This document shows, piece by piece, positions 5,797-56,875 of a stretch of DNA of 64,000 bases. The position numbers and the translations under genes were made by a program. Under the pieces are notes generated by a model. That model did no database searches, was not told the origin of the DNA, and worked only from the letters and a program-made list of their open reading frames with translations. Each line of letters begins with the position of its first letter. Within the stretch, counting starts at the first letter, position 1. The stretch covers positions 124,001 to 188,000 of the IMG/VR virus record IMGVR_UViG_3300005613_000001. The stretch is one strand, 5' to 3'.

Positions 5797-5955
5797 GGTA
5801 AAGTTCCTTCTAGTTAGTCAGGAAATCCCCTGACAATGTGAATGTTGGCGTACTACCCAGGTGCCCGCCGATACCAACGGGAATTGACTCGTTGGGCAGT
5901 GGTTTGCTAAGGCGAAAACATTCGTGTTCTTTAAACATAATATTTCCCCGTGCAG

Positions 5956-6030
5956 TGACCCCAATCGGATTTGAACCGATGTTGCTGGCGTGAAAGGCCA
6001 GTGTCCTAAGCCTAACTAGACGATGGGGCC
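5956..6030 (-). tRNA. tRNA-Glu(TTC)
   Basis: Cloverleaf; CTGGC-CT TTC AC-GCCAG; T-loop TTCAAAT. Confidence 0.92.
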
Positions 6031-10632: not shown

Positions 10633-10730
10633 TAGGACTGGAAGGAATCGAACCTTCTCCTAGAGTTAATCTGACTCTACCTTTCGGCCAAGGTTATAAG
10701 CCTTGTGTGCTTCCATTACACCACAGTCCC
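10633..10730 (-). tRNA. tRNA-Ile(TAT) with long two-hairpin variable region
   Basis: CAAGG-CT TAT AA-CCTTG; V region GCCGAAAGGT + AGAGT..ACTCT; 98 nt. Confidence 0.75.
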
Positions 10731-33456: not shown

Positions 33457-33531
33457 CGAGAGCGACGGGACTTGAACCCGCAATCCCCAGCGTGACAGGC
33501 TGGTGCGTTAAACCAATTACGCTACGCCCCC
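33457..33531 (-). tRNA. tRNA-Asp(GTC)
   Basis: CCAGC-CT GTC AC-GCTGG. Confidence 0.92.
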
Positions 33532-34029
33532 TTTAACATATAATTTAGGGAAAGGCACATCAGGAATCGGCAGAGAGAAAAAATCGCACAGCTTATCCCA
33601 ACCATCGCCCTCAATTATATTCATTCTCAATAGCGGCTTATCTTGAAAAAAATCAGCCACCGCTGGGTAATGACTATTATATATTCTTACCCATTTCTTA
33701 AAATCAACCTTTAACCAATTCCCCTTATAGTTTTTTTTGTTTCTGTTTCGTTTTACATGACCCTCTCTGCTTCTAAGCCAACTTCGCAACTCACGCTCTG
33801 TTAAAATAAATTTAGCACCAGGAAACTTCCTGTGTAGCTCTCTAAAGTGGAAAGGAAGGTTGCCATCAAGATACGCATTAACCCTCTTTGTTCCAAAATC
33901 TAAATTTTCTAATAAAGCATTGTTTTTATGTTCATCATGTTGTGGTGTCCACCCCAATATTCTAAGTGCCGCACTCAAAGAATGCGTACCTGTTTTATTC
34001 AAGCCTATACAAAATACAAGAGGTTTCAT
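33517..34029 (-). CDS. Sulfotransferase family (Sulfotransfer_4-like)
   Basis: FCIGLNKTGTHSL...AKFILT.R...W..S...DGWDKLCDFF. Confidence 0.82.
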   Translation of the reverse strand: MKPLVFCIGLNKTGTHSLSAALRILGWTPQHDEHKNNALLENLDFGTKRVNAYLDGNLPFHFRELHRKFPGAKFILTERELRSWLRSREGHVKRNRNKKNYKGNWLKVDFKKWVRIYNSHYPAVADFFQDKPLLRMNIIEGDGWDKLCDFFSLPIPDVPFPKLYVKGGVA

Positions 34030-34871: not shown

Positions 34872-34908
34872 AACTCCTTTTCAATTCAATACACTCAGGC
34901 TATACCAA

Positions 34909-34993
34909 ATACAACGTCAGGATTCGAACCTGAACTTCTGGCTCCAATTCGCTTATGCTTTAGCCAGCGTGCTACCATTACACTACAATCGTA
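34909..34993 (-). ncRNA. tRNA-Gln-like RNA with ~13-nt insertion in anticodon loop
   Basis: Gln-type D-arm GTGT/GCAC, CTGGC/GCCAG stem, 20-nt loop ending TTGGA, intact T-arm. Confidence 0.6.
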
Positions 34994-35182
34994 CCGCTTT
35001 CAGAACGCTACTGAAATCTAACTACTCAAACTAACTACTAACTATGGACTATTGAGTATTGACCTGTCCAGGCCCTTCCCCTGGCTCACGGTTTTTATAG
35101 CCTAAGCGAATGTTATCAATACCTTTCATCCATAGGGTTCATTAACTCTTTCATCAAATTATTTCACGAACCTACTCACAAG

Positions 35183-35270
35183 CTCTGCGGGCTGGACTCG
35201 AACCAGCGATGGGGCTTTCGCCACTCCTGATTAACAGTCAGGCTCCTGCTACCAACTCGGATACCGCAGA
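35183..35270 (-). tRNA. tRNA-Asn(GTT) with long variable arm
   Basis: CCTGA-CT GTT AA-TCAGG; V-arm GGC-GAAA-GCC; 88 nt. Confidence 0.8.
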
Positions 35271-35275
35271 TTAAG

Positions 35276-35349
35276 CGACGGTGACGGGAATCGAACCCGC
35301 GCCCTCTTCCGTGACAGGGAAGCGCTCTTACTCTCTGAGCTACACCGCC
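35276..35349 (-). tRNA. tRNA-Asp(GTC)
   Basis: CTTCC-CT GTC AC-GGAAG. Confidence 0.92.
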
Positions 35350-35354
35350 TCAAT

Positions 35355-35729
35355 TTATTTTACACTTCTTCCTTTTACCTTCCCAGTTTTTGGTTTCTTG
35401 GCATCTTCAACCATTTTCTTAAAAGCATCTACTTCCTTTGTTGCCTCTTCGATTGTAACCTCATGACCGTAATTGCTTCCAAAATCACAAGATTCACAAC
35501 CACTGTTGGCGTAATCATCTACATCAATCTTATCTGTGCCAAACAACTCAGATAATGCCTTCAACTTCCCAAAACTCAAACGTGGGGCTTCATACATGGC
35601 ACCCCATTTAATTACAAGAGTACCATCAGTCCGCACCGAATACTCAAGATATGGCTTTGACCACTCTCTATCATCAGCAAGGATTTCCTCAATCCTGTGG
35701 CCGATCCATCTTGTCTTTTCTTTTTTCAA
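35355..35729 (-). CDS. Hypothetical phage protein
   Basis: SGCESCDFG motif. Confidence 0.6.
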   Translation of the reverse strand: MKKEKTRWIGHRIEEILADDREWSKPYLEYSVRTDGTLVIKWGAMYEAPRLSFGKLKALSELFGTDKIDVDDYANSGCESCDFGSNYGHEVTIEEATKEVDAFKKMVEDAKKPKTGKVKGRSVK

Positions 35730-36414
35730 TTTTTTCTTCTAACTTTCTTGCGTGTTCTGCTTTTTGTTCTTCTAATTGTTGTGCTGCGGCCTCTCTATCC
35801 GCTTTAGCTTCATCAAAATCCTTGAACAAAAGATTTCCTATTTGGAATCTGTCAATCGTCTCCAATCTGCCTTTCTCATCCTTATAGCACAACTCTTGTT
35901 CCGTTTCATGCACTACCTCAACATAGGAACCTTCTTCTGCCTGTCTGCCACCCCACAATAGGAACAACTTCTTACCCACGAAAGAATCATTCTCATCTAA
36001 TTCCGTTTCTATCCCACGACGTTCAAAGAATTGTGGCATATCTTTTGTAGATAAAGCCGTTTTTCGTTCATAATGCACTTGCTCTATCTTTGTTAATTTA
36101 CCATCAACGAAAGTCGCCTCAAAAGTTACAGACTCAGCATCTTCACCATCATAAGTGTATTCTCCTACTGGACCGCATGCAGATATTGTGCTTCCATAAA
36201 ATTCCACTACACCTGTGAAATTATCATAATTATCTGCTATGTTTGAAAACGGCCACTTGGTATCATCTCTCGCTTCTTCATCAAGCGTACCGTCCGCTGT
36301 TATGATTATAGTTGCTAAGGTGCAACCAAAATCCTTAGTTTGATATTCACCTACTAACTCCACCGGCTCGCCAGGAAGAGGATAGTCGCATCTTAAATAA
36401 TCAAACATTCCCAT
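35689..36414 (-). CDS. Hypothetical phage protein
   Basis: MGMFDYLRCDYPLP...YQTKD...FVDGKL phage-type N-terminus. Confidence 0.65.
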   Translation of the reverse strand: MGMFDYLRCDYPLPGEPVELVGEYQTKDFGCTLATIIITADGTLDEEARDDTKWPFSNIADNYDNFTGVVEFYGSTISACGPVGEYTYDGEDAESVTFEATFVDGKLTKIEQVHYERKTALSTKDMPQFFERRGIETELDENDSFVGKKLFLLWGGRQAEEGSYVEVVHETEQELCYKDEKGRLETIDRFQIGNLLFKDFDEAKADREAAAQQLEEQKAEHARKLEEKIEKRKDKMDRPQD

Positions 36415-36673
36415 CTAGTTGCTCCATTTTTCTCGTAATAATTGAGTAATCTTTATCATCCTTCGCCTTTTTGACAGATACATGAACATTGCCTACTAAA
36501 AATTCAACAGGTTCAACCTCATTAACTTTGACTCGACCTAAAGCTAATTCATCAGTTCCTTCAGCTATTTCCTTTCTTAATTTTCTACTCTCTATAGAAA
36601 GTGATGCAACTTCCTCACCAATCTGTATGAACCGCTTAACCTTCTCAATGAATTCAGCCTTGTCCATCTTCAT
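36401..36673 (-). CDS. Hypothetical protein
   Basis: ORF chain. Confidence 0.55.
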   Translation of the reverse strand: MKMDKAEFIEKVKRFIQIGEEVASLSIESRKLRKEIAEGTDELALGRVKVNEVEPVEFLVGNVHVSVKKAKDDKDYSIITRKMEQLDGNV

Positions 36674-36683
36674 TTCCTTTCAG

Positions 36684-36755
36684 AGCTACCGGAGGGATTT
36701 GAACCCACAACATTCACATTACAAATGTGACGCTCTGCCATTGAGCTACGGTAGC
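36684..36755 (-). tRNA. tRNA-Thr(TGT)
   Basis: TCACA-TT TGT AA-TGTGA; one T-stem mismatch. Confidence 0.88.
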
Positions 36756-36876
36756 AATTGCGGTTAATCTTTTGGCTTAGATCGTGCTGCCATCACTGGT
36801 TGTCAAAAGCCGCAACCTATCAGAATGATAGTTTTGACAACCACCAAAAAACCGCCGCAATTGGCATTTTATCAAG

Positions 36877-36952
36877 CTGCGAGGGTAGGAATCGAACCTA
36901 CGAACCCCTGGTTCAAAGCCAGGTATTTCTTACCAACAGAAACTACCTCGCA
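36877..36952 (-). tRNA. tRNA-Gln(TTG)
   Basis: CCTGG-CT TTG AA-CCAGG; U1-A72. Confidence 0.88.
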
Positions 36953-36966
36953 AAATTTAATTTTAG

Positions 36967-37041
36967 AGGCTGGTCTGGGATTTGAACCCAGGACAATCTG
37001 ATTAACAGTCAGACGCTCTAACCGGACTGAGCTAACCAGCC
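36967..37041 (-). tRNA. tRNA-Asn(GTT)
   Basis: TCTGA-CT GTT AA-TCAGA. Confidence 0.9.
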
Positions 37042-37796
37042 ACCATAAATTCTTTTCTCACTTTTTCTGGAGGTTTTCTCCAATCCAACTTTATTTTTCC
37101 CGCTCTCAACTTACTTTGGTGACCAAAATTCACACTATAGTTGTCATCATGCAAACACCACATGGTACTTCTAAATGGAATTCTTGCAGGGTTAAAAAGT
37201 TTATGAACCTGATGCCTTCCCAACCAACTTACGGCCCACTCAAAATCATTCATATTACTTTTAACATAAGAAGCCTTAACGGCAACTGTGCTTCCACAAT
37301 GAAGGTTTAAATCATCGTTCGGAACCATCTTTCCCGTTTGCGTGTTTAAAATATATCCTCTATTTGAAATTACAACTCTTTTTTGTCGTTTCATCAAATC
37401 TCCTACAAGGCGATTTGATATTAAATCATCTGCATCCATCATGAAAAAATACTTTGGGTCCATCTCCAATGCAGCTTCTACTGTTAATAACCTCTTTTTA
37501 GCCTTATCTACATTATGTTCTCTGGTTATTGCCTGCCAGTGAGACAAGCTTGTTTCTTCCAATGGTGCGATATAGGGTTGAGGATGCGAAATTGGATCTG
37601 TGCCCATTTCCAAAATCGTCACCTTTTCATGGTCTATATCATCGTCCAAAGGCAACTTCTTGTTTGCACCAACAAAAATATGAAACCTATCATCCCTGCT
37701 GTTGCAAACACTTCTAATTGTATTGTTTAATAATCTCCAAATTTCTGCGTAGTTGCAGTTCTCAGGGTGTTTTACTGGAATTACAAAAGCTATCAT
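37032..37796 (-). CDS. GT-A-fold glycosyltransferase-like
   Basis: FVIPVKHP...DKAKKR...MMDADDLIS. Confidence 0.7.
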   Translation of the reverse strand: MIAFVIPVKHPENCNYAEIWRLLNNTIRSVCNSRDDRFHIFVGANKKLPLDDDIDHEKVTILEMGTDPISHPQPYIAPLEETSLSHWQAITREHNVDKAKKRLLTVEAALEMDPKYFFMMDADDLISNRLVGDLMKRQKRVVISNRGYILNTQTGKMVPNDDLNLHCGSTVAVKASYVKSNMNDFEWAVSWLGRHQVHKLFNPARIPFRSTMWCLHDDNYSVNFGHQSKLRAGKIKLDWRKPPEKVRKEFMVAG

Positions 37797-37818
37797 TTTT
37801 CTTTCTGGTTAAAGTAAG

Positions 37819-37900
37819 TAGGGCCGGTGGGTAACGCTCCCACATTGCGGTTTCCCGCCCTGATTAAGAGTCAGGTGCATTGCTTGTCTGCCACGACCCC
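37819..37900 (-). tRNA. tRNA-Lys(CTT) with long V-arm and aberrant T-loop AGCGTTA
   Basis: CCTGA-CT CTT AA-TCAGG; V-arm GCGG-GAAA-CCGC. Confidence 0.7.
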
Positions 37901-37905
37901 AAATT

Positions 37906-38478
37906 TTATTCTCCTGCTTGTTCTAAAATCTTCTTTGCCTTTTCAATTTCCTTAGCCTTCTTCTTTTCCGCTCGCTTCTTAGCCGCTTCGGCCCTCTTTG
38001 CCTTTTCCCTCTTCAATCTTGCCACTTCAGCATCATAAACCTTCTTCTGCTTTGCCGTAAACAACTTCTTAAGGGAAGGCTTCGTCATAGCCTGTACAAT
38101 TTGTACATTTTCATCGGCTAATGCTCGTATCGTATTCTCCCGCATTCTGGTTACATCAACCTCACTTGGAGAACCCCAACTATTTCGTCTCCTGTCTATG
38201 TAATAAAACTTCTTCCCCGCCACCAGCTTTTCTTCACGATCTTGGATAGCCTTCTTATCCACCCAGCCAAGTGAAGCAAGCAAATTCAAAACAAACTCAT
38301 TCTTTTCCTCAATCGCCTTCCTAATTAAAGCAGCCACTTCGCCTTGAGTTTCATAGTTCCCTATCAAATCAACTAAACTAACTTCTTGCACGGTGACTTC
38401 AGGATCATAGGAACCATAATCATCAGCACCCTCACAATAATGTTCTTCCGTACTAACCAAAATTAACTTACGTGACAT
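37906..38478 (-). CDS. Hypothetical protein with Lys/Ala-rich helical tail
   Basis: ORF chain. Confidence 0.6.
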   Translation of the reverse strand: MSRKLILVSTEEHYCEGADDYGSYDPEVTVQEVSLVDLIGNYETQGEVAALIRKAIEEKNEFVLNLLASLGWVDKKAIQDREEKLVAGKKFYYIDRRRNSWGSPSEVDVTRMRENTIRALADENVQIVQAMTKPSLKKLFTAKQKKVYDAEVARLKREKAKRAEAAKKRAEKKKAKEIEKAKKILEQAGE

Positions 38479-38962
38479 TTCTGTTCCTCAAACATTCATA
38501 TAGTGATTGTTCTTCACTATCAGTAGGGGTCACCAGAGCTTTATCCTCTATAATCAAAACTTTTGCATGTATCTTTCTATGGCAATTAGAACAAACACAA
38601 ATGCATTTCTTGATTTCTTCAATTAGTTTTTCAATACTCTTCTTAGCTACCCACGCCGATATGTTATCATTTTTATCATTTACATGGTGGAAATCAAGAC
38701 AACAGGGTTCCGTTTCTCCACAAAAACAACACCCTTCCCTCTTTTTTATTTCCTCAACTACTAATCTTATTTTTTGTTTCTTAATCCTGTTGTATTCTGT
38801 ACTTTTGTGCAAAACCACATCGCGGTTGGTTTTGTAATATTCCTTGGCATTTTGGATAGCACAAATCTTACAGTATGAGTGTAATCCATCCTTCTTGCCA
38901 GGACTTTTATGAAACTCCTCAATGCTTTTTTCTTTGTTACATCTTTTACATCGCTTAACCAT
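38468..38962 (-). CDS. HNH homing endonuclease with N-terminal Zn finger
   Basis: CKRCNKEK..EF...YCKIC; CCFCGE..PCCLDFHH...KCICVCSNCHRKIH. Confidence 0.82.
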   Translation of the reverse strand: MVKRCKRCNKEKSIEEFHKSPGKKDGLHSYCKICAIQNAKEYYKTNRDVVLHKSTEYNRIKKQKIRLVVEEIKKREGCCFCGETEPCCLDFHHVNDKNDNISAWVAKKSIEKLIEEIKKCICVCSNCHRKIHAKVLIIEDKALVTPTDSEEQSLYECLRNRNVT

Positions 38963-39026
38963 AATAACCTCCTAAGTTATTATAGTTAAGCTAGATTAAA
39001 ATTCCCTCTATTTTTTTAAACCAAAG

Positions 39027-39100
39027 TGAGCCCAGCGAGACTCGAACTCGCAGTCTACGGATTAAAAGTCCGTTGCATTAGCCTATTATGCTATGGGCTC
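39027..39100 (-). tRNA. tRNA-Lys(TTT)
   Basis: ACGGA-CT TTT AA-TCCGT. Confidence 0.92.
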
Positions 39101-39106
39101 AATCAG

Positions 39107-39187
39107 TAGGGCCGGTGAGATTCGAACTCACATTGTCCTTTCGGACCCAGATTAAAAGTCTGGAGCATCCCTATCTGCCACGACCCC
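39107..39187 (-). tRNA. tRNA-Lys(TTT) with long V-arm
   Basis: CCAGA-CT TTT AA-TCTGG; V-arm GTCC-GAAA-GGAC. Confidence 0.8.
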
Positions 39188-39256
39188 TTCAATATTGGGG
39201 TCTGCGTTTCAATCTGTAAGGGTCACGAATCATTTTTAATTCTCCTGTTATTAAAG

Positions 39257-39331
39257 TCGGGGTGAAAGGATTTGAACCTTCGGCCCCTGGTCCCCCAGAC
39301 CAGTGCTCTATCCAGGCTGAGCTACACCCCG
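39257..39331 (-). tRNA. tRNA-Pro(GGG)
   Basis: CTGGT-CT GGG GG-ACCAG. Confidence 0.92.
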
Positions 39332-39334
39332 TAG

Positions 39335-39403
39335 TAGAGCGTGCTGCCATTACACTACCGCCGCCTTCCGGCACCGGACGGGAATCGAACCCGCACTTCT
39401 CCA
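39335..39403 (-). ncRNA. Circularly permuted tRNA-like module B (T-arm, loop-closed acceptor, D-arm)
   Basis: TGGAG AAGT GCGGG-TTCGATT-CCCGT CCGGTGCC-GGAA-GGCGGCGG TA GTGT-AATGGCA-GCAC G CTCTA. Confidence 0.75.
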
Positions 39404-39458
39404 TTGGACTACTGGAAATAAATTTCCAGGCGAGAATTGAACCCGCACTTACTTCCAA
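39404..39458 (-). ncRNA. Permuted tRNA-like module C (D-arm missing)
   Basis: TTGGA..AAGT GCGGG-TTCAATT-CTCGC CTGGAAA-TTTA-TTTCCAG TAG TCCAA. Confidence 0.55.
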
Positions 39459-39459
39459 G

Positions 39460-39544
39460 AGACGATGGTGGGATTCGAACCCACGCGGAGCTAATGCTCG
39501 ACAGTTTTGCAGACTGTTGCCTTCAACCACTCGGCCACATCGTC
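39460..39544 (-). tRNA. tRNA-Cys(GCA) with long V-arm
   Basis: ACAGT-CT GCA AA-ACTGT; V-arm GAGC-ATTA-GCTC; U73. Confidence 0.82.
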
Positions 39545-39548
39545 ATAC

Positions 39549-39619
39549 AGAGAGCGTGCTACCCTTAACACCACCCCCGCCTTACGGCGGTGACGGGATT
39601 CGAACCCGTACTTCTCTCT
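39549..39619 (-). ncRNA. Circularly permuted tRNA-like module A
   Basis: AGAGAG AAGT ACGGG-TTCGAAT-CCCGT CACCGCC-GTAA-GGCGGGGG TG GTGT..GCAC G CTCTCT. Confidence 0.75.
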
Positions 39620-39633
39620 TTCTCACTTTTAAG

Positions 39634-39707
39634 TCGGAATGCCTGGAATCGAACCAGAACCTCTTGCTTATCAGGCAAACGTGCAGAAACCACTACACCA
39701 CATTCCG
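39634..39707 (-). tRNA. tRNA-Ile(GAT)
   Basis: TTTGC-CT GAT AA-GCAAG. Confidence 0.85.
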
Positions 39708-40277
39708 ATGTTCCTTTCGGTGACAATTCGTACAAAGAACTTCACACTTGTCTATTTCCTCTTTCAAATAATCCAAAGAATGACCTGATGCTAAAAGGTA
39801 CGCAATTGTAAACCTTTTGTCTTCAAGATGATGAAATTCTAAACATCTAGAGTCGTCTTCACTACAAGCTTTACATTTGGACAATTTGATAAAATCAATA
39901 AACCATCTTCTTTTTTTAATTCTCCTTTCTCCAAAATTTCTCCAATTTGATCCATCTTCTATAATTAAAGGCTCATGTCTCTTTCGGTGACAATTACCAC
40001 AAATAACTTCACACTTGCTTATCTCTATTTGAAGTTTTTCTATTGTGGTAGCATTCCGTATAAGCTGACTAACTGTGTTCGATTTTCCATTTACATGATG
40101 AAAGTCCAAACAAATCTTATCATCTATTCCACACTCACAACACCTTGTCTTAAGAGAATAAACATACTCATTGTTTCTTCGCCTCCGACTTTTTATTCCT
40201 TCTCTGTATTTGTCTTTGTTTTTTAAATAGTGTTTCTTTTGAGCCTCTTTTTGTCTTTGTTTGTCTTTATAGGGCAT
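39693..40277 (-). CDS. Homing endonuclease with two tandem HNH domains
   Basis: Two copies of C..C.....CL.FHH...KCEV.C.NCHRK.H. Confidence 0.82.
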   Translation of the reverse strand: MPYKDKQRQKEAQKKHYLKNKDKYREGIKSRRRRNNEYVYSLKTRCCECGIDDKICLDFHHVNGKSNTVSQLIRNATTIEKLQIEISKCEVICGNCHRKRHEPLIIEDGSNWRNFGERRIKKRRWFIDFIKLSKCKACSEDDSRCLEFHHLEDKRFTIAYLLASGHSLDYLKEEIDKCEVLCTNCHRKEHRNVV

Positions 40278-40334
40278 ATTGAACCTCCTCTATTATATAG
40301 AGTAAGGTTCAATACATTTTACCACCCTTTTTAG

Positions 40335-40410
40335 GGTGGCAGAGCGGAATCGAACCGCCGCCAACCTCGTTCACAGCGAGGCTCAGGAAACCAACACCTG
40401 ATCCTGCCAC
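40335..40410 (-). tRNA. tRNA-His(GTG)
   Basis: CCTCG-CT GTG AA-CGAGG; C73; G-1 apparently not encoded. Confidence 0.82.
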
Positions 40411-40412
40411 AG

Positions 40413-40487
40413 TGGGAATACTTGGATTCGAACCAAGGGCCTCATCCTTATCAGGGATGCGCTCTAAACCGACTGAGCTATATTCCC
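40413..40487 (-). tRNA. tRNA-Ile(GAT)
   Basis: CATCC-CT GAT AA-GGATG. Confidence 0.92.
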
Positions 40488-40509
40488 AGTTTTAATTCCT
40501 CCTTTTAAG

Positions 40510-40586
40510 TCGGGGCGAAAAGATTCGAACTTTCGGCCTCCTGGTCCCAAACCAGGCGCTCTTAAACCAGGCTGAGCTACGCCCCG
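40510..40586 (-). tRNA. tRNA-Pro(TGG)
   Basis: CCTGG-TT TGG GA-CCAGG. Confidence 0.92.
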
Positions 40587-40598
40587 GTGGAGCCACCA

Positions 40599-41054
40599 TC
40601 AGGCAGCATGCTTTTCCCTCAGGTGGCATAATTGTTTTTTATATTTTTCGCTGTGTTCTCTAACAGCCTCTTTTCCTTTTTTAGTTAAATGCCAATATCG
40701 GTATCCTCTATTTCTAGGGCCAAACTCGCCCCCTTCTTTTTCATACAGCCAACCGAACTCCATCATCAATTTAAATTTAGTTTCAGGAACTTTTATTCCA
40801 CTTGCCGTATAGGCGGTTGCATTTCTCCTTCCATCGGGTCGTTCTACAATGCAACCCCAGTACAATTCTCGTTCCGCAACCGTCGCCTCTTTTTCTTTTG
40901 CTAGGTGGCCCCAATTTTGTTTGAAGCCCCAACTCATTTTATAACGAGGCGGCAATTTCTTTCGTACAACAACAGGCGTTAAGGCTTCCAAAACATCCCA
41001 CAGAGTAGGAATATGTTTATGTTTTTTGCCACACCGTTTTTGTACTCTTTTCAA
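40599..41054 (-). CDS. Basic hypothetical protein
   Basis: 151-aa ORF. Confidence 0.55.
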   Translation of the reverse strand: MKRVQKRCGKKHKHIPTLWDVLEALTPVVVRKKLPPRYKMSWGFKQNWGHLAKEKEATVAERELYWGCIVERPDGRRNATAYTASGIKVPETKFKLMMEFGWLYEKEGGEFGPRNRGYRYWHLTKKGKEAVREHSEKYKKQLCHLREKHAA

Positions 41055-41200
41055 GGTTCGGTCTCCTTTTCTTCTTTTATAAAAACTTTACCACACCACT
41101 TACATCTGAATTCGTTACAATCACATTCACAAAAAACGAATTCATTATCCCCACATGAGGGGCAAATCGGTTCTTCTTTTTTCATTTCATCCTTTCTGAG

Positions 41201-41272
41201 AGCGGCTAGTCGGAATTGAACCGAACTCTTCCAGCTTGGCAAGCTAGCGTGCAACCATTACACCTTAGCCGC
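41201..41272 (-). tRNA. tRNA-Gly(GCC)
   Basis: CTAGC-TT GCC AA-GCTGG; U73. Confidence 0.88.
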
Positions 41273-41278
41273 TTAAAG

Positions 41279-41348
41279 CAGGTGCGGAGTGATTCGAACA
41301 CTCTCTTCTGGTTTTGGAGACCAGAGCTACTCCCAGGCAGTCGCACCT
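41279..41348 (-). tRNA. Compact tRNA-Trp(CCA): short D-arm, 6-bp anticodon stem, 3-nt V-loop
   Basis: TCTGGT-CT CCA AA-ACCAGA; 70 nt. Confidence 0.75.
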
Positions 41349-41538
41349 ATTTCTGTCTCATTTTTTCATACCAAATTTCTTTTTCAATTGCTTCTGTTGG
41401 CATTACCATTCCACATCGAGAACATTTAAAAGGGGCAAACTTAACCCCTGCATATACTTACAAAGTTTGCAATAATGCCCACCTGTAAATCTCCAAATCG
41501 GCTGTTCTCTTTCTTTTTTTTTCCATACCAACTCATAG

Positions 41539-41611
41539 TGACCCGGAAGGGAATCGAACCCTCGTATCCCTGGCTGAGAACCAGGGTGCCTAACCAACAC
41601 AGCACCGGGCC
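41539..41611 (-). tRNA. tRNA-Glu(CTC)
   Basis: CCTGG-TT CTC AG-CCAGG. Confidence 0.82.
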
Positions 41612-41693
41612 GCGCTCTACGGATTGAAGCAAGGCAGTTGCGTCCAACTCGCACTCTCTTATTTATAGGGAGCTTAGACCCCCATCCGTAAAG

Positions 41694-41764
41694 AGCGGGT
41701 GAAGGGTGTCGAACCCTCGTCAACAGGTTGGAAACCTGTGGCTCTACCGTTGAGCTACACCCGC
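41694..41764 (-). tRNA. tRNA-Gly(TCC)
   Basis: ACAGG-TT TCC AA-CCTGT. Confidence 0.9.
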
Positions 41765-42177
41765 CAATGTTTTTTGGCATGGCAATTTGCACACAAAGGA
41801 GTACATTTTTCAATCTCTTTCAATACTCTTTGTTTGCATCCTGACATTACCAAGCGTGATACAGTCTCCTCTTTATCATCCTCATTATGGTGAAATTGGA
41901 TGCATGCAGGATGGTTTTCTCCGCATTCTGCACATTTAAATCTAACTTTATAATCCTTCCACCAACCCCTAAAACTCTTCCTCCAAACTGCTGCTTTGCC
42001 AATGTACTTTTTCTTATTCGCTAAGTAGTGCTGCCGACGATATGCTCTTTGGCAATCAATACATTGACTCTGCAACCCATCTGAAGCTCGTTTTCTACTC
42101 TTGAAACAACTACGTGGGAGATTTTTTTTACACCCACAACATTTTTTAGTATCCATACCAATATATAGTGTTTCCAA
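41755..42177 (-). CDS. HNH homing endonuclease with N-terminal Zn finger
   Basis: CCGCKK...QCIDC; CAECGENHPACIQFHH...KCTPLCANCHAKKH. Confidence 0.82.
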   Translation of the reverse strand: METLYIGMDTKKCCGCKKNLPRSCFKSRKRASDGLQSQCIDCQRAYRRQHYLANKKKYIGKAAVWRKSFRGWWKDYKVRFKCAECGENHPACIQFHHNEDDKEETVSRLVMSGCKQRVLKEIEKCTPLCANCHAKKHWRV

Positions 42178-42213
42178 CCGGATTTTTGTTTGGAAACCTC
42201 ATAAATTTCCAAG

Positions 42214-42302
42214 TGACGCTGACGGGAATCGAACCCGTGTGGTTATAATAACCTTCAGGTTGAAAGCCTGAATACCCTTTAGCCAACAGAGTGCCCAGCG
42301 CC
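42214..42302 (-). tRNA. tRNA-Glu(TTC) with long V-arm
   Basis: TTCAGG-CT TTC AA-CCTGAA; V-arm GGTTA-TTA-TAACC; 89 nt. Confidence 0.75.
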
Positions 42303-42305
42303 TCA

Positions 42306-42725
42306 TTAATATAATTTTAAATCTCCTGTTACTTTGTCAATTTTCTCTGCATCATCTGGTCCGATTGCGATACAAGTTGGTGTTGGAACTCCATCAAATT
42401 CGGTTTTCCCACTATCAACGATCAATTCACAAACGAGCCCTTCATCTTCTGCTTTCTGTTTAACTTCCATCAATTCTTCTTCGCTATTCACTCTAACGGT
42501 GACTTTAGCGAAGCTATTTTTTATCCATTCAATTTCTTGTTCGCTTAGATGTAGAACATCCAGAAGTTTTACTGTTCCTGCCCAGGGCAGAGGATGTTTT
42601 TGATCTAATTCTTTTCTAATTCTGTTTGATAAAAAGGCCATTGAGGCATGAGACCCTTGGGCAATTTCTTTACCCCGCCTCATTTTTAAATCTTTACGAA
42701 TTACAATGACCTGTTTTACTGGCAT
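42306..42725 (-). CDS. pth2: Peptidyl-tRNA hydrolase, Pth2 family
   Basis: KQVIVIRKDLKM.RGK..AQ.SHA; DSGKTEF...T.T..AIGP...IDKVTG.LKL. Confidence 0.93.
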   Translation of the reverse strand: MPVKQVIVIRKDLKMRRGKEIAQGSHASMAFLSNRIRKELDQKHPLPWAGTVKLLDVLHLSEQEIEWIKNSFAKVTVRVNSEEELMEVKQKAEDEGLVCELIVDSGKTEFDGVPTPTCIAIGPDDAEKIDKVTGDLKLY

Positions 42726-43251: not shown

Positions 43252-43265
43252 GTTAAATCAAAAAG

Positions 43266-43350
43266 CGCTGGGGCTTGGAATCGAACCAAGCGTTTTTACC
43301 GGCTGCCCATTATAGACATGAGGTAGTGTTCTACCATTGAACTACCCAAC
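43266..43350 (-). ncRNA. tRNA-like RNA with enlarged (21-nt) anticodon-loop region
   Basis: D-arm GTTC-AATGGTA-GAAC, T-arm CTTGG-TTCGATT-CCAAG, no assignable anticodon. Confidence 0.55.
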
Positions 43351-43352
43351 AG

Positions 43353-43424
43353 TGGTCGGAGCGGGAATTGAACCACGCATCTCCCTCTTTAATGGAGGGC
43401 GTTCTAGCGTTGAACTATCCAACC
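43353..43424 (-). tRNA. Aberrant tRNA with TTA (ochre) anticodon, probably non-decoding
   Basis: CCCTC-CA TTA AA-GAGGG; A33, no D-loop GG, bulged T-stem. Confidence 0.45.
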
Positions 43425-43651
43425 ATAACCCTGTCGGGGTCGCAGGGCTTAAAACCCATTTTGACGATCCAACAGGGAACAAATAGTGAGAGTAAGAGGT
43501 TTAGTTCCTTTACTGGCGTTCAGGAATCTAACCTGCCAGGCCCTACTCTCCAATTTGGACTACACACAACGCAACTTTTGGTCACAAAGTACCGGGTCGC
43601 TTTGCGTCCCAGATCTTTGCTTAGGGGTCGCTTTGCGTCCCCCGACCAAAG

Positions 43652-45565: not shown

Positions 45566-46639
45566 ATGAGGTTCATTCCATATCTGGGCAACAAACGCAA
45601 GCTCATAGACCCCATCCTAAAGGCGATAGGACAGCAGGGCAAGGTCTTGGACCTGTTCTCGGGGAGTGGGGTTGTCAGCTATCATCTGCGAAAGCGAGGG
45701 GCTGTCGTCCATGCCAATGATACCGCCTCTTATTCTTATCATATTAATAAGACATACTTGGGAAGAATTGACCGCTCCGAACAGTTTTCCCAATATATAA
45801 ACTGGCTTAATAAATTTAGTGAAAATCCCAGAGAAAGATACTTTTCTAGATATTACAGTGAGAATCCAGACGCTTCAAAGGAAAGAATATACTACACAGC
45901 GAGAAATGGAGCATTCATAGATTTCATTCTTCAACAAGTGTGGGCCAGAACTTGGATTCAAAAAATATTTGAACATTCCAACACCTGGGAATCTCCTGTT
46001 TTGTGTGATTTACTTTACCAAATGTGTACTCACGCAAACACTTCTGGCGTATTCAAATCTTGGCATAAGAAATTTGCAGGAGAGAAACGATTTGAGGGGG
46101 TTCACAAGAGAGTGCATAAATCCAATCTTAAGCGTATTACGACACCTATTAAACTTGAAGTGCCTACGATACCGGAAGGTCCAGAAGGTCAAGCATTCCA
46201 ATACGATGCAATAGAATTCTTTGATCGGGTGGATGATGAATACGACGCAATTTATATTGACCCGCCGTACAATACCCACCAGTATTCTGCTAATTATCAC
46301 CTATTAGAACAAGCCTGCCGCCCCTTTGAAAGAAGATATATACCAACTGACGATCAGGTGAGTGGGATTCAACCGGACTTATACAAATCCCCATATTGCA
46401 GCAAAAAGAAGTTCCACAAGACTTTTGTTGCTCTTTTTGATAAAATTAAAGACCGAACCAATCGCCTCGTAGTCTCCTACAACTCAAAAGGCTTTCTGGG
46501 CCAACAGGAGATTAAAAATCTATTAGGGGAAAGGTTTAATGAGGTTTCAGTCCAAGAGATAGATTACTTTAATTATAGAGGCGGCAGGGCGGCTAAGGAG
46601 CCTGTTAAGGAGCTATTGTTCATTGCGGAGAATTCATGA
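45566..46639 (+). CDS. DNA adenine methyltransferase (D12/FokI-like class)
   Basis: PYLGNKRKL; DLFSGSGVVS; YIDPPYN.HQYSANYHLLE. Confidence 0.88.
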   Translation: MRFIPYLGNKRKLIDPILKAIGQQGKVLDLFSGSGVVSYHLRKRGAVVHANDTASYSYHINKTYLGRIDRSEQFSQYINWLNKFSENPRERYFSRYYSENPDASKERIYYTARNGAFIDFILQQVWARTWIQKIFEHSNTWESPVLCDLLYQMCTHANTSGVFKSWHKKFAGEKRFEGVHKRVHKSNLKRITTPIKLEVPTIPEGPEGQAFQYDAIEFFDRVDDEYDAIYIDPPYNTHQYSANYHLLEQACRPFERRYIPTDDQVSGIQPDLYKSPYCSKKKFHKTFVALFDKIKDRTNRLVVSYNSKGFLGQQEIKNLLGERFNEVSVQEIDYFNYRGGRAAKEPVKELLFIAENS

Positions 46640-49530: not shown

Positions 49531-50217
49531 TTACGATCTTTTACGAGTGTTAGACTTATTAGCTAGAACATCAAGATACGCCTCATCGTACTCTATCTCA
49601 CCTTCAAGGTACGCATAAAACGCATTCAACATTCCGGCTGCAATGTAGTTGTTGGCGATCAAAAGCTGTGGTTCACTCACAACTTCAACGTCACAACCAC
49701 CCTCACGCTCTTCAATGTCTGCCGGACTTTCATCTTCGGGCTCTTCAATTTCAGGATGATATTCATTTGCAATTGGAAGGGTTAGGTTTTCCCCATCTTT
49801 GCGAATATGAACCTGAACGTTTCCGTCAATGTAGTCGTTTCCACCCGAAATCACAACCACATTATCCAACTCTTCACAATGGTCGGATACCAACTTGCGA
49901 GTGGCATGATTATCCACACACGAAAAGATAAGATCACCTTCCCTCAAAAGCATGATGATGTTATCTTGGTCGATATAAGTGGGGTGCGACCGGAAGAAAA
50001 TAGAGGGGAATTCTTTCTCCAACACCTTCGCGGTTACTTCCGCTTTATTCCCCAATTCATCGAAGGCTTGTCGGTCACGATTCTTTTCTTCGTAAGTATC
50101 TCCATCAATAAGAGAAATTTCCGTGTCCTGTAACTCAGGATGGTAATTCAAAAACCTACAAAGCGTATCAAGTAAGCGACCGGCAATCCCGCCGCAACCA
50201 ATCACCCGTATTTTCAT
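49531..50217 (-). CDS. ThiF/E1-family adenylyltransferase
   Basis: VIGCGGI; IDGD..EEKN..RQ; SCVDNHATR; catalytic-type Cys before PQL..AN. Confidence 0.9.
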   Translation of the reverse strand: MKIRVIGCGGIAGRLLDTLCRFLNYHPELQDTEISLIDGDTYEEKNRDRQAFDELGNKAEVTAKVLEKEFPSIFFRSHPTYIDQDNIIMLLREGDLIFSCVDNHATRKLVSDHCEELDNVVVISGGNDYIDGNVQVHIRKDGENLTLPIANEYHPEIEEPEDESPADIEEREGGCDVEVVSEPQLLIANNYIAAGMLNAFYAYLEGEIEYDEAYLDVLANKSNTRKRS

Positions 50218-51563
50218 GCTTTACTCCCTTCATCATTAGGCTCCGAATCCGGCAATGCATCTTTCTGCGAAGCAAGACCATATCCATCCACCTTAATATT
50301 TTCTTCGGTGTCTTCTTCGCCTTCTTCGCCTTCCCAAACATCATCACCCATTTGGGCATTTCGTTCTTGCTCTTCGGCAGCTTCAAGTTCGGACTCTTTT
50401 ACCCAAACACCACCGGCTGTTTGCATATAAGTTTCGCCACCCGTATCTTCATCATCGTCTTCAATATCCTGATGAAGTACCGTGCCGCCACTACGACTGC
50501 CTTGACCAAAGCCAAAACCTCCATAGTTTTGCCAAACTTTTTTTGAGACTTTGGGCAACCAATGAGCATCCATGTGGGCTTCCATTTCGGCCTTCATGGT
50601 CTGCAATTGTTCGGCTGTAAAGTCAAAGTCGTAGTAGTTTTGGTAACCACTGGAAATGTAGTAGCTCTTCTTGGCTTTAGCATCACCAATGCGAACCATA
50701 TTCAACGCAACATTTTCACAATCTACCTCTTCCCGGTAGTCATTCAACACCAAAGAAGATGCAACCGAAAAATGTTCGTCAGTAACGTGGCCCAAGGTTA
50801 AATGCACACCATCAAAACTGGCTTCATCACCTGTATCTGTGCCAGAGTGGAACGCATTAAAACTGGGGTGGGAGTGAATAGTGCCGACATTCATAAAACC
50901 GGCATTAGCCAATTCAAGCATAGCTTGATCCGGCTGTCCCCACTGGTTTTGTTCAGCCGCCGTCAAATTGGCGGGAGCATTAAGTTTGCCACTAGGACTC
51001 TTAACATAGAATCTGCGGTCGTATGAAATAGAACCGCCACTCACTTCCTGCTTTGGACAATGCAAAGCATATTGCTTCGTTTCGGGATTAAAGGCAATGA
51101 TAACAACACCTTCTGCCTTGTGTGCCCGATAAACTTTGCGGAAGAACAGCAATGCCCGATAAATGATTTCACCTGGCAACTTGGGCAGCATCATGTTGAT
51201 ATACGGTTCAACAGCATAAAGCCCTTGATAGTTGCCTTCATCATCATCTTCGAACTTTTCACCAGTAAGAGGATCGATGAGAGTCAAATCTTCTTCATTC
51301 TCATCATCATCCTTCTTCCAGTAGCTATAAGTAGGTTTTGTTTCGGTTTTTGAACCCTTTAGATAGACAGGCCCATCCGGTGTGTCAATACAATATCCCA
51401 CTTTCACCATACCGGGAACGTCTTTCACTGGCATGGCAATTAGACCCTCAAACAGCCCAACGTCCTTGCGGACAAAGGCACCATTCGCAGCGATCACGAA
51501 ATATGTCCCCCGTTCGGGGAATTCCACACCATCTTTAGCTACTATAACCGGATAGATTCCCAT
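50214..51563 (-). CDS. JAB/MPN metalloprotease (deconjugase) with long acidic extensions
   Basis: E...VGTIHSHPSFNAFHSGTDTGDE. Confidence 0.88.
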   Translation of the reverse strand: MGIYPVIVAKDGVEFPERGTYFVIAANGAFVRKDVGLFEGLIAMPVKDVPGMVKVGYCIDTPDGPVYLKGSKTETKPTYSYWKKDDDENEEDLTLIDPLTGEKFEDDDEGNYQGLYAVEPYINMMLPKLPGEIIYRALLFFRKVYRAHKAEGVVIIAFNPETKQYALHCPKQEVSGGSISYDRRFYVKSPSGKLNAPANLTAAEQNQWGQPDQAMLELANAGFMNVGTIHSHPSFNAFHSGTDTGDEASFDGVHLTLGHVTDEHFSVASSLVLNDYREEVDCENVALNMVRIGDAKAKKSYYISSGYQNYYDFDFTAEQLQTMKAEMEAHMDAHWLPKVSKKVWQNYGGFGFGQGSRSGGTVLHQDIEDDDEDTGGETYMQTAGGVWVKESELEAAEEQERNAQMGDDVWEGEEGEEDTEENIKVDGYGLASQKDALPDSEPNDEGSKA

Positions 51564-56873: not shown

Positions 56874-56875
56874 TT

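Follow-up and report, generated by a model that had tools for sequence, protein, structure and literature searches.

A 527-kb phage carries tRNA genes for lysine, asparagine, cysteine and glutamate with an extra hairpin in the variable region. Five such genes, all on the minus strand, were called by ARAGORN in the window, that is, the 64,000-nt stretch of the phage genome analysed here (positions 124,001 to 188,000 of IMG/VR record IMGVR_UViG_3300005613_000001). In bacteria a long variable arm is normally confined to the tRNAs for leucine, serine and tyrosine. As the best explanation we suggest that the genes encode working, cognately charged tRNAs whose added hairpin hinders bacterial defence nucleases, and we give this explanation an even chance of being correct.

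The original prediction had placed long arms on tRNA-Asn(GTT), Lys(CTT), Lys(TTT), Cys(GCA) and Glu(TTC); ARAGORN recovered all five genes, and the predicted start coordinates are exactly the positions of the discriminator bases on the minus strand. Each gene forms a 7/5 cloverleaf with a variable region of 14–18 nt that folds into a hairpin, and the cloverleaf of four arms plus hairpin was obtained by unconstrained RNAfold in 5/5. The tRNA-Asn(GUU) (35183..35270, 88 nt to the discriminator; fold supported; Rfam 53.8 bits, the tRNA cut-off being 29 bits) has a variable region of 18 nt (35208–35225) with the stem GGC/GCC and a GAAA loop, and begins with U1-A72 and C2-G71 and ends with G73. The tRNA-Lys(UUU) (39107..39187, 81 nt, 51.8 bits; supported by the covariation of its family) has a variable region of 14 nt (39132–39145) with the arm UCC-GAAA-GGA, and A73. 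The tRNA-Cys(GCA) (39460..39544, 85 nt, 64 bits; variable region of 16 nt, 39485–39500) combines U73 with a D arm resembling that of tRNA-Ser, and the tRNA-Glu(UUC) (42214..42302, 89 nt; variable region of 15 nt, 42239–42253), at 27.6 bits just below the cut-off, has G1-C72, G2-U71, C3-G70, A73 and an anticodon stem of 6 bp. The tRNA-Lys(CUU) (37819..37900, 82 nt, 39 bits; variable region of 15 nt, 37844–37858; A73) shares the acceptor stem GGGGUCG/CGGCCCU with the long tRNA-Lys(UUU), and, as had also been noticed, the variable stems of the two are unlike (GCGG/CCGC in the arm GCGG-GAAA-CCGC versus UCC/GGA) while a GAAA loop caps each. This gene has a non-canonical T loop (AGCGUUA) and a D loop without GG, hence no G18G19; such a tRNA would normally be impaired, and we count the gene against our best explanation. 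An identical copy lies on the metagenome contig L091, and in a diverged relative (L162) the T loop is likewise altered and the D loop again lacks GG. The first reading of the sequence had missed a sixth long-arm member, a tRNA of 98 nt with anticodon UAU and two variable hairpins, the first capped by a GAAA loop (10633..10730, minus strand; Rfam 57.6 bits, fold supported, not called by ARAGORN). Two more odd long tRNA-like genes lie at 34908–34994 and 43265–43350.

Normal-length copies for Asn, Lys(TTT) and Glu(TTC) are present, in agreement with the prediction, all on the minus strand: tRNA-Asn(GUU) at 36966..37041 with an atypical acceptor end (G1-C72, U73), tRNA-Lys(UUU) at 39026..39100 with A73, 5 nt apart from its long counterpart, and tRNA-Glu(UUC) at 5955..6030 with G1-C72, G2-U71 and A73. 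For cysteine, ARAGORN found no normal-length gene anywhere in the 527-kb genome; the long gene is the sole tRNA-Cys and therefore completes the 20-amino-acid tRNA set of the phage. The presence of both forms for Asn, Lys(UUU) and Glu(UUC) could suggest that the normal copies decode and that the long copies soak up tRNA nucleases or host factors, or have some other non-translational role. The damaged-looking T loop of the Lys(CUU) copy and the AriB-recognised site retained by long Lys genes (see below) point the same way, and some allo-tRNAs are apparently unused in translation (PMC5389517). However, the long-arm genes have preserved features that only charging and decoding require, namely the identity nucleotides, 7-nt anticodon loops, U33, a purine at 37 and, in 22/24 members of the Lys family, a canonical T arm. 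The long form moreover stands alone for Cys here and for Lys and Asn in a Mesorhizobium phage, and we regard a decoy function as quite improbable.

The phage also encodes proteins that handle tRNA. A peptidyl-tRNA hydrolase gene of the PTH2 family (42306..42725, minus strand; Pfam PF01981, E = 4.5e-33) adjoins the long tRNA-Glu with a gap of 4 nt; the genome further encodes RtcB, a ligase for RNA repair, and an enzyme of the CCA-adding type. Aminoacyl-tRNA synthetases gave no match in the phage to the four families searched, which include the enzymes for Lys/Asn/Asp, for Ser/Thr/Pro/His/Gly, for Leu/Ile/Val and for Tyr/Trp. The vicinity or presence in the genome of PTH2, RtcB and the CCA-adding-type enzyme, as well as the over-representation of GAAA loops (44/188 long-arm tRNAs versus 30/266 class II tRNAs), would fit an arm that serves as a handle for a protein encoded by the phage or the array; it might, for instance, exempt the element's own tRNAs from a phage nuclease destroying those of the host, or recruit a dedicated modification or repair enzyme. 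On the contrary, no candidate reader protein was identified, the loop sequences are diverse and in many cases not of the GNRA type, and the same design is found in unrelated phages and bacterial arrays whose neighbouring genes differ. Such a handle appears highly doubtful to us.

The long-arm design is recurrent and not peculiar to one phage. Pattern scans gave 29–39 non-redundant long-arm tRNAs for each of Lys, Asn, Cys and Glu, which come from large viral contigs, a cultured Mesorhizobium phage and about 30 chromosomal arrays of Acidobacteriaceae, which are soil bacteria. The Lys pattern has more than 120 metagenome matches. Long Cys genes were found at 47 viral loci versus 79 with normal spacing and the same loop and T-arm motifs (32 non-redundant relatives), and the long-spacing Glu pattern at 97 viral loci, among which ARAGORN called 52 unique long tRNA-Glu genes (39 non-redundant relatives in viral contigs). 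In the cultured Mesorhizobium phage Cp1R7A-A1 the long form accounts for two Lys genes and one Asn gene of 88 nt, and normal-length Lys or Asn genes are absent from its annotated tRNA cluster. In the arrays of about 30 Acidobacteriaceae species a long Lys gene occupies a fixed slot beside RtcB; these loci comprise 25–31 co-oriented tRNA genes, exist besides the housekeeping tRNAs, are flanked by RtcB and contain an HNH endonuclease. With respect to the number of tRNA genes, the internal HNH gene and the adjoining rtcB they resemble the L-arrays (PMC8421152), of which the one in Anabaena is stress-induced (PMC8421152), and the mycobacterial array units (PMC12803027). In these reports, however, Acidobacteria are listed as devoid of L-arrays, and no array is described that regularly includes a tRNA-Lys(UUU) with a long arm (PMC8421152, PMC12803027).

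In the Lys family, 97.6% of cells pair across 24 non-redundant relatives, all four variable-arm pairs vary on both sides, and the covariation score of 0.771, as compared to 0.197 in shuffles, was reached by 0/500 shuffles; the pairing pattern is beyond chance. The tertiary pair 15-48 covaries too (G-C in 13/24, A-U in 6/24). In all long isotypes the folding of the variable regions matches that of Leu, Ser and Tyr (mean z −2.5 to −5.7), and the loops are stable GNRA tetraloops in 65/188 long-arm tRNAs versus 60/266 class II tRNAs. The added hairpin is maintained by selection. A rival view without any defence role holds that the variable region is the sole place in a tRNA that accepts extra RNA and that hairpins therefore come and go, appearing in redundant tRNAs of phages and arrays and disappearing from tRNA-Leu; the hairpin would be kept at most to stabilise the core of fast-made, poorly modified tRNAs. 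In line with this view long arms are found in almost every isotype, GNRA tetraloops are frequent, the converse trend is seen at the same loci in 54/152 unique genes for tRNA-Leu, which are at most 78 nt long and armless, and translation is compatible with engineered variable-arm hairpins (PMC7590224). It is more difficult to reconcile with compensatory changes that have kept the hairpin over at least 24 diverged Lys lineages, with the fixed slot beside RtcB and with the strongly uneven isotypes: in an off-target census the long forms were commonest for Asn (27/91, 30%), Cys (8/39, 21%) and Lys (8/52, 15%), occurred in Thr only with the anticodon UGU and were rare in Arg (2/330, 0.6%), Gly and Phe. 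We consider a merely tolerated or stabilising insertion unlikely.

The original prediction also described the genes as class-II bodies. This description is correct only in part: the Lys and Cys genes have D arms of the class-II type, whereas in most of the Glu family the D arm is of the tRNA-Glu type. The Lys family has a Leu/Tyr-like D arm together with A73 and U35; in the Cys gene the D arm, the anticodon stem and the T arm are all tRNA-Ser-like, and nucleotides 7–78 are 86% identical to a tRNA-Ser of the cyanophage Synechococcus phage RB11-B. For the long Asn gene a class-II neighbour was not found in the phage. As in canonical class II tRNAs (Leu, Ser, Tyr, Sec) there is a long variable hairpin, the acceptor and T stems are 7/5, the Levitt pair is formed with the base immediately 5′ of the T stem, and the D stem of the Lys and Cys genes is 3 bp long with G13/A22. 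What separates the genes from class II tRNAs is that anticodon, discriminator and first acceptor pair are of class-I isotypes, for example U73 in Cys or U1-A72 with G73 in Asn; in Asn and in most of the Glu family the D arm, too, is still that of the gene's own isotype.

In a set of several hundred unique tRNAs with long arms, both the discriminator and the first acceptor pair go with the anticodon, exactly as they do in the normal-length copies. U73 is present in 35/38 unique Cys genes, 8/9 Thr and 2/2 Gly genes, G73 in 22/27 non-redundant Asn relatives (U1-A72 in 17/27) and in 5/5 Asp genes, C73 in 3/3 His genes, C1-G72 and A73 in 5/6 Pro genes, A73 in 82/87 Lys genes and G3-U70 in the one long Ala gene; the long Glu gene agrees with the two normal tRNA-Glu genes of the phage in A73 and in the three acceptor pairs at the start of the stem. 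Judged from these sequences, the long-arm genes are probably cognately charged, translating tRNAs plus an arm. The one sequencing run located for the phage consists of DNA reads, with a word share of 0.06. A deliberate mistranslation had also been proposed, in which SerRS, LeuRS or TyrRS would charge the long-arm class-II bodies and Ser, Leu or Tyr would be placed at Lys, Asn, Cys and Glu codons. Nematode V-arm tRNAs with Gly or Ile anticodons, as reportedly described by Hamashima et al., keep Leu identity and are mischarged; they share with our genes the class-II shape and class-I anticodons and would be one precedent, but in our genes identity nucleotides and anticodon agree. The allo-tRNAs found in Acidobacteria (PMC5389517) would be a second precedent. 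Neither SerRS nor bacterial LeuRS reads the anticodon, and the long arm is the main cue for SerRS (PMC9976931). The Lys genes (A73, U35, G1-C72, long arm) also meet the main known tRNA-Tyr determinants (PMC9976931), and their D arm is Leu/Tyr-like; some serylation of the long Cys may occur, because its body is Ser-like and U73 is also carried by 26/141 of the Ser tRNAs from these loci. Nevertheless, mistranslation is disfavoured and in our view very improbable: the discriminator and the 1-72 pair match the anticodon in every isotype, the Asn genes with U1-A72 and C2-G71 differ from the phage's own Ser tRNAs (G1-C72, G2-C71), and the Leu determinant A15-U48 is confined to 6/24 of the Lys family, the two copies in the window having U15 or C15 instead. 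In addition, the Lys(CUU) copy is devoid of the D/T-loop contacts required by LeuRS (PMC9976931), some long Lys genes have U73, the Lys variable regions are shorter than those of Ser (median 16 versus 19 nt), and in several phages, as with Cys here, the long form is the sole gene for its amino acid.

The allo-tRNAs of Acidobacteria, Clostridia and Proteobacteria (Mukai et al. 2017, PMC5389517) likewise have a long variable arm and non-Ser/non-Leu anticodons, come from soil and peat metagenomes and Acidobacteria, and sometimes lie in polycistrons of irregular tRNAs. They differ by 8/4 or 9/3 stems, a tRNA-Sec-like D arm and a predicted Ser identity (G73/U73), whereas the genes here have 7/5 stems and isotype-specific identity nucleotides. 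The selC* tRNA-Cys, which likewise combines U73 and the anticodon GCA with a long variable region, is charged by CysRS, thus a long arm is compatible with cysteinylation (PMC5389517). However, selC* mimics tRNA-Sec (8/4, long anticodon stem), is found in anaerobic bacteria beside selB* and cysS* and in many cases decodes UGA (PMC5389517), whereas our Cys gene is 7/5, has a Ser-like D arm and belongs to a phage tRNA array.

In the explanation that we prefer, host synthetases would charge the long-arm tRNAs according to their anticodon with Lys, Asn, Cys and Glu, and the tRNAs would be used on the ribosome. The class-II-style 3-bp D stem of the Lys and Cys genes would make room for the hairpin, which would reshape the tRNA face beside the 3′ strand of the anticodon stem and the D loop. 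Nucleases for ordinary class-I tRNAs (PARIS/AriB-type Toprim, PrrC/RloC and Schlafen-type tRNases) would then bind or cut the long-arm forms poorly, and the phage, or a bacterium with a backup tRNA array, could keep translating while the housekeeping tRNAs are cut. Against evasion we count the scarcity of long arms in Arg, Gly and Phe, even though tRNA-Arg is known to be cut by a nuclease (colicin D). It also counts against evasion that the variable loop itself can be a target, as in tRNA-Tyr cut by Septu (PMC13096335). Nevertheless, nuclease evasion, one of the readings in the original prediction, is plausible if unproven, and it is the best-supported purpose that we can suggest for the arm, with AriB targets among the extended kinds and RtcB encoded by the phage or adjoining the arrays. 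The cut that PARIS/AriB makes in tRNA-Lys(UUU), Asn(GUU) and Thr(UGU) falls at 40|41, and the arm emerges three bases away (PMC12409363); the second AriB subunit touches bases 16–17 of the D loop (PMC12409363, PMC11464382). These targets are three of the recurrently extended kinds, and tRNA-Lys(UUU) is cleaved by RorSlfn5 as well (PMC13056530). The phage T5 with its tRNA-Lys/Thr/Asn against PARIS (PMC11464382, PMC12409363, PMC10264068) similarly has copies of the nuclease-cut isoacceptors in large tRNA clusters. Such tRNAs are known to escape by point substitutions in the anticodon stem-loop and the D loop, whereas in the long-arm genes, with their putative resistance, the stem-loop motif is mostly retained and a whole hairpin is added. 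In fact UAAUC at 36–40, the site recognised by AriB, is found in 23/32 clusters of long Lys genes versus 22/67 of normal-length Lys genes from the same loci. The contrast agrees with escape by either of two routes, an added arm or substitutions in the stem-loop. It may also reflect shared descent rather than selection, and we count against our reading that the housekeeping tRNA-Lys(UUU) of Acidobacteriaceae is without this motif.

The original prediction placed class-I anticodons on tRNA bodies with a long variable arm at five positions, and all five genes are found there, the positions being those of the discriminator nucleotides. The genes are located on the minus strand and correspond to Asn(GUU) (35183–35270), Lys(CUU) (37819–37900), Lys(UUU) (39107–39187), Cys(GCA) (39460–39544) and Glu(UUC) (42214–42302). 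They all combine acceptor and T stems of 7 and 5 bp with an anticodon loop of 7 nt, and the variable region of 14–18 nt folds into a hairpin whose stem has 3–4 bp. The loop of this hairpin is GAAA in Asn and both Lys genes, AUUA in Cys and AUUAU in Glu. Unconstrained free-energy folding reproduces the same structures, and the Rfam scores range from 64 bits for Cys down to 27.6 bits for Glu, which is slightly below the cut-off. A sixth long-arm gene, absent from the original prediction, has the anticodon UAU (10633–10730, minus strand, 98 nt) and carries two hairpins in the variable region. By the textbook view, bacteria have a long variable arm only on the tRNAs for Leu, Ser, Tyr and Sec; here Lys, Asn, Cys, Glu and many further isotypes carry it, with the cognate identity nucleotides kept. 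The window genes share with canonical class II tRNAs a variable region of more than 10 nt that forms a stem–loop, as is also seen from the covariation in the Lys family and from the fold z-scores (see below), but their anticodons GUU, CUU, UUU, GCA and UUC are not those of Leu, Ser or Tyr.

Normal-length partners had also been claimed for Asn, Lys(UUU) and Glu(UUC), and these are present at 36966–37041, 39026–39100 and 5955–6030. Neither a normal Lys(CUU) nor a normal Cys gene was found when the genome was scanned with ARAGORN. The long Cys gene is the only Cys gene of the phage, and therefore its 20-amino-acid set depends on this gene.

The viral record has 527,112 bp, is rated complete and includes the window as bases 124001–188000. 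ARAGORN predicts 59 tRNA genes in the genome, 41 of them in the window and all on the minus strand; Rfam counts 63 in the whole genome. The cluster in the window consists of class-I isotypes and two suppressor-like genes, and a second cluster at 309–321 kb comprises Phe and the canonical class II tRNAs, namely three genes for Ser, five for Leu and two for Tyr. The suppressor-like genes adjoin each other on the minus strand: a CUA-anticodon tRNA of 86 nt with an unstructured variable region of 15 nt (43265–43350, Rfam 32 bits) and a UUA-anticodon tRNA of 74 nt (43352–43425). They are potential amber and ochre suppressors. Stop-codon recoding was considered as the reason for their presence, and a crude test of open-frame coverage revealed no region of the genome obviously needing it. 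The phage tRNA genes apparently do not encode the CCA end, and a 541-aa protein with the head domain of CCA-adding enzymes and poly(A) polymerases is found outside the window (genome ~512064–512567, plus strand). Small co-oriented open reading frames are interspersed among the tRNA genes of the window, one of them coding for a PTH2 peptidyl-tRNA hydrolase only 4 nt from the long tRNA-Glu. Around the cluster there are accessory metabolic and modification genes (33517–34029, 45566–46639, 55767–56978 and 1066–1773), namely a sulfotransferase, a Dam-type DNA methyltransferase, a GDP-mannose 4,6-dehydratase-like epimerase and a glycerol-3-phosphate dehydrogenase fragment. In addition, three minus-strand genes split across the window (6419–7174, 49531–50217 and 50214–51563) with prokaryotic E2 (Prok-E2_D), E1-like (ThiF) and JAB deubiquitinase-like domains look like a ubiquitin-like conjugation set. 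A megablast search of GenBank phages with 12 kb of the array returned single tRNA matches only, and a protein search with the open reading frame at 37032–37796 found nothing.

The Lys genes were used to build a search pattern comprising the anticodon loop, a 4-bp stem left free, GAAA and the start of the T arm. This pattern matches nine viral contigs, more than 120 metagenomic contigs among the matches listed and 32 places in 185,579 species genomes. In an alignment of 24 non-redundant Lys genes (<93% identity) 97.6% of the cells are paired and the covariation score is 0.771 compared to 0.197 in shuffles; neither any of the shuffles nor any slid register approaches this value. All four pairs of the variable arm change on both sides, and the inner three are always paired and use four to five pair types each. 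This covariation is not circular, since the pattern placed no constraint on the bases of the stem. The acceptor stem (100% paired) and the T stem (99.2%) also show compensatory changes, and the tertiary pair 15–48 covaries, being G–C in 13 of the 24 genes and A–U in six. The long-arm tRNAs are thus a family and not an accident.

Long forms are not confined to Lys. Scans for long-spaced genes yielded 47 viral loci for Cys and 97 for Glu(UUC), many of them on contigs of 100–675 kb. Normal-spaced Cys genes with identical loop and T-arm motifs occur at 79 viral loci, so that about one-third of the viral tRNA-Cys genes with these motifs are long. The non-redundant long sets comprise 32 Cys, 39 Glu and 27 Asn genes (<85% identity) and 29 Lys genes (<93% identity). 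Long arms are found in nearly all isotypes of the fetched loci, albeit unevenly: when unique genes of isotypes other than the scan target are counted, they are present in 27/91 Asn, 8/39 Cys, 8/52 Lys, 12/120 Met, about 12/127 Gln, 9/177 Thr (all long ones UGU) and 2/330 Arg genes. According to the fold z-scores these variable regions are no worse at folding than their Leu, Ser and Tyr counterparts. The arm is a feature of a large share of the tRNA sets of big phages, and also of bacterial backup tRNA arrays. The cultured Mesorhizobium phage Cp1R7A-A1 has 88-nt Lys(CUU), Lys(UUU) and Asn genes with GNRA hairpins, with no normal-length Lys or Asn gene in its tRNA cluster, and offers a laboratory system for long-arm tRNAs. 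No relatives in cultured phages were found for the long Cys gene or the long Glu gene, the sole phage match of the latter being an uncultured phage of 462 kb.

Which amino acid do these tRNAs carry? The decisive pattern is that the identity nucleotides follow the anticodon. In their discriminator and acceptor distributions the long genes agree with the normal-length genes of each isotype: U73 is found in 35/38 long Cys genes, and long Asn genes have G73 in 22/27 and U1–A72 in 17/27 cases, and through the latter pair bacterial tRNA-Asn is marked for the amidotransferase (PMC1635274). Likewise, long Asp genes have G73, His C73, Pro C1–G72 and A73, Thr and Gly U73, Lys A73 and the single Ala gene G3–U70. 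The window genes combine their anticodons with the nucleotides typical of the isotype, that is GCA with U73 in Cys, GUU with G73 and U1–A72 in Asn, YUU with A73 in Lys, and UUC with G1–C72/G2–U71/C3–G70/A73 in Glu, an acceptor end common to both normal tRNA-Glu genes of the phage. In case of Asn it is the long gene that has the canonical acceptor end, whereas the normal-length gene (36966–37041, minus strand) has G1–C72 and U73 instead of the usual U1–A72/G73. A dedicated phage-encoded synthetase was considered as partner, and the phage genome gave no match to tRNA-synt_2, tRNA-synt_2b, tRNA-synt_1 or tRNA-synt_1b, a search covering the four families that include Lys/Asn/Asp, Ser/Thr/Pro/His/Gly, Leu/Ile/Val and Tyr/Trp. 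Judging from the gene content, charging would have to fall to host enzymes. A search of sequencing runs gave a single match, a DNA run with a share of 0.06, and no RNA run was among the matches. On the basis of the sequences, the long-arm genes would be best explained as cognate tRNAs which serve in translation and whose extra arm is under selection. If they are charged correctly, many synthetases tolerate the class-II shape, which bears on tRNA evolution and on the engineering of orthogonal or tagged tRNAs.

The original prediction had also proposed deliberate mistranslation, with SerRS, LeuRS or TyrRS mischarging the long-arm tRNAs. This is disfavoured, as the identity nucleotides track the anticodon and the determinants of SerRS and LeuRS are incomplete when the genes are compared with the identity rules for class II tRNAs (PMC9976931). 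For SerRS we looked for G73, an acceptor of the type G1–C72/G2–C71 and an arm of Ser length; yet Cys has U73 and A2–U71, Asn has U1–A72 and C2–G71, Lys and Glu have A73, and the variable arms of Lys, Cys and Glu have a median of 16 nt versus 19 nt for Ser. The discriminator mismatch should be read with some caution, as 26/141 Ser tRNAs in these loci have U73 themselves. Leu identity requires A73 together with A15–U48, G18G19 and contacts between D and T loop (PMC9976931). A73 is present, but only 6/24 members of the Lys family have A15–U48, position 15 is U or C in the Lys copies of the window, and GG and the T-loop consensus are also absent from the CUU copy. Charging of the Lys genes by TyrRS stays compatible with the sequence because A73, U35 and the long arm are all present; position 34 is U or C and position 36 is U, and the identity rule adds G34. 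The U73 of some Lys relatives argues against TyrRS charging as the selected function. With regard to the origin of the genes, similarity within the phage gives a mixed picture, the nearest neighbours of Lys and Cys being weakly class II and those of Asn and Glu not class II. The Cys gene is the most ambiguous as to charging: it agrees with a cyanophage tRNA-Ser in the D arm, anticodon stem and T arm and departs from it only in acceptor stem, discriminator, anticodon and arm sequence, as if a Ser scaffold had been given Cys identity.

The long-arm genes differ from the known tRNAs of unusual shape. Nematode V-arm tRNAs (Hamashima et al.) reportedly keep Leu identity, whereas the genes described here have the identity nucleotides of the anticodon's isotype. 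Allo-tRNAs have 8/4 or 9/3 acceptor/T stems and Ser identity, in contrast to the 7/5 standard geometry that ARAGORN and Rfam assign to the long-arm genes. The selC* tRNA-Cys resembles the window gene at 39460–39544 in U73, the anticodon GCA (or UCA) and the long arm, but it is a tRNA-Sec-like 8/4 tRNA in a selB*/cysS* neighbourhood, whereas the window Cys gene is 7/5 and lies beside other tRNA genes and small phage open reading frames. CysRS does accept a long-arm tRNA-Cys (PMC5389517). With phage anti-defence tRNAs the long-arm genes have the logic in common, but the structural device differs. Full-text literature searches, with most subscription journals outside their coverage, gave no account of class-I tRNAs with a long arm in phages.

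Nuclease evasion would be the leading purpose of the arm. Several defence systems act by cutting tRNA-Lys(UUU). AriB of the PARIS system cuts it between positions 40 and 41 and also targets Thr(UGU) and Asn(GUU); a model places the second AriB subunit on the D-loop bases 16–17, and variants of the Lys, Thr and Asn tRNAs allow phage T5 to escape (PMC11464382, PMC12409363). The bacterial Schlafen protein RorSlfn5 cuts tRNA-Lys(UUU) in the same anticodon arm (PMC13056530). The 41-gene cluster of the window includes copies of the targeted isoacceptors Lys(UUU) and Asn(GUU), the added hairpin starts three bases 3′ of the AriB site, and in the Lys and Cys genes the D arm is remodelled alongside the hairpin. 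The hairpin would change the shape of the tRNA such that defence nucleases gauging this shape no longer fit. Several findings fit survival of tRNA damage: the long forms repeatedly include Lys, Asn and Thr(UGU), an RtcB RNA ligase is encoded by the phage outside the window (genome 72048–73172, minus strand, 279.6 bits), rtcB also lies beside the bacterial arrays, and the UAAUC motif is kept in 23/32 long Lys clusters versus 22/67 for normal-length Lys genes of arrays or phages. This last contrast may be phylogenetic. It counts against nuclease evasion that Cys and Glu are extended as often as Lys, and Arg almost never. If the arm does block tRNA-cutting defence enzymes, this would be a new counter-defence principle and a testable explanation for the big tRNA sets of large phages.

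The opposite change is seen in tRNA-Leu. In the fetched loci 54/152 unique Leu genes are armless (72–78 nt); such short genes, for example in Mesorhizobium phage Cp1R7A-A1 (L319, 920–1076) and many viral loci, combine a class-II D arm with a 5-nt variable loop. The armless genes are compatible both with an escape based on shape and with a variable region that is simply plastic. We tentatively suggest, while considering it rather doubtful, that phages and mobile tRNA arrays use the variable arm as a modular shield which acts through shape: a hairpin is added to class-I tRNAs, with Lys, Asn, Cys and Glu foremost, and stripped from tRNA-Leu, such that synthetases still read the unchanged identity nucleotides and shape-gauging defence nucleases no longer fit. 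If this is true, tRNA class would be an evolvable immune-evasion trait and not a frozen property of the isotype.

Of the 32 genome matches of the Lys pattern, 30 are in tRNA arrays of Acidobacteriaceae/Terracidiphilus with 25–31 co-oriented tRNA genes in 4–5 kb. The Lys(UUU) gene of these arrays (87–89 nt) is invariably located between a 75-nt Lys(CUU) and Arg(UCU). An open reading frame for an HNH endonuclease lies inside the arrays and rtcB adjoins them; in one Acidobacteriaceae MAG contig (L011, 2086–6340), for example, the conserved array of about 31 tRNA genes encloses an HNH endonuclease gene and is accompanied by a divergent rtcB. Three of five array-bearing genomes checked have an ordinary tRNA-Lys(UUU) elsewhere, and therefore the arrays are accessory L-arrays in the sense of PMC8421152, which are long, co-oriented, supernumerary tRNA arrays with a homing endonuclease and rtcB. 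The same survey from 2021 listed Acidobacteria as devoid of long arrays (PMC8421152). The arrays of the MAG contigs L011–L042 also contain a UAU-anticodon tRNA of 79–92 nt, a candidate allo-tRNA whose anticodon is unusually distant from the 5′ end.

Two further types of unusual genes were observed. The Lys(CUU) gene of the window (37819–37900, minus strand) and a diverged long-arm Lys(CUU) gene of another locus (L162, 501–583) both have a D loop without GG and a T loop that is altered (AGCGUUA and UGCGAAC, respectively); this may point to an alternative elbow that is conserved, and less to a pseudogene. Furthermore, tRNA-like genes of 84–95 nt with normal acceptor, D and T arms have an anticodon arm with a loop of ~20 nt or an insertion. 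They are found in the window (34908–34994, minus strand), elsewhere in the phage genome (118940–119023, outside the window) and at two compared loci (L002, 5520–5612, and L092, 2445–2539). ARAGORN assigns to them the four-base anticodons aaag, aaac and gcgg, and they might represent intron-like insertions, frameshift-type tRNAs or decoys.
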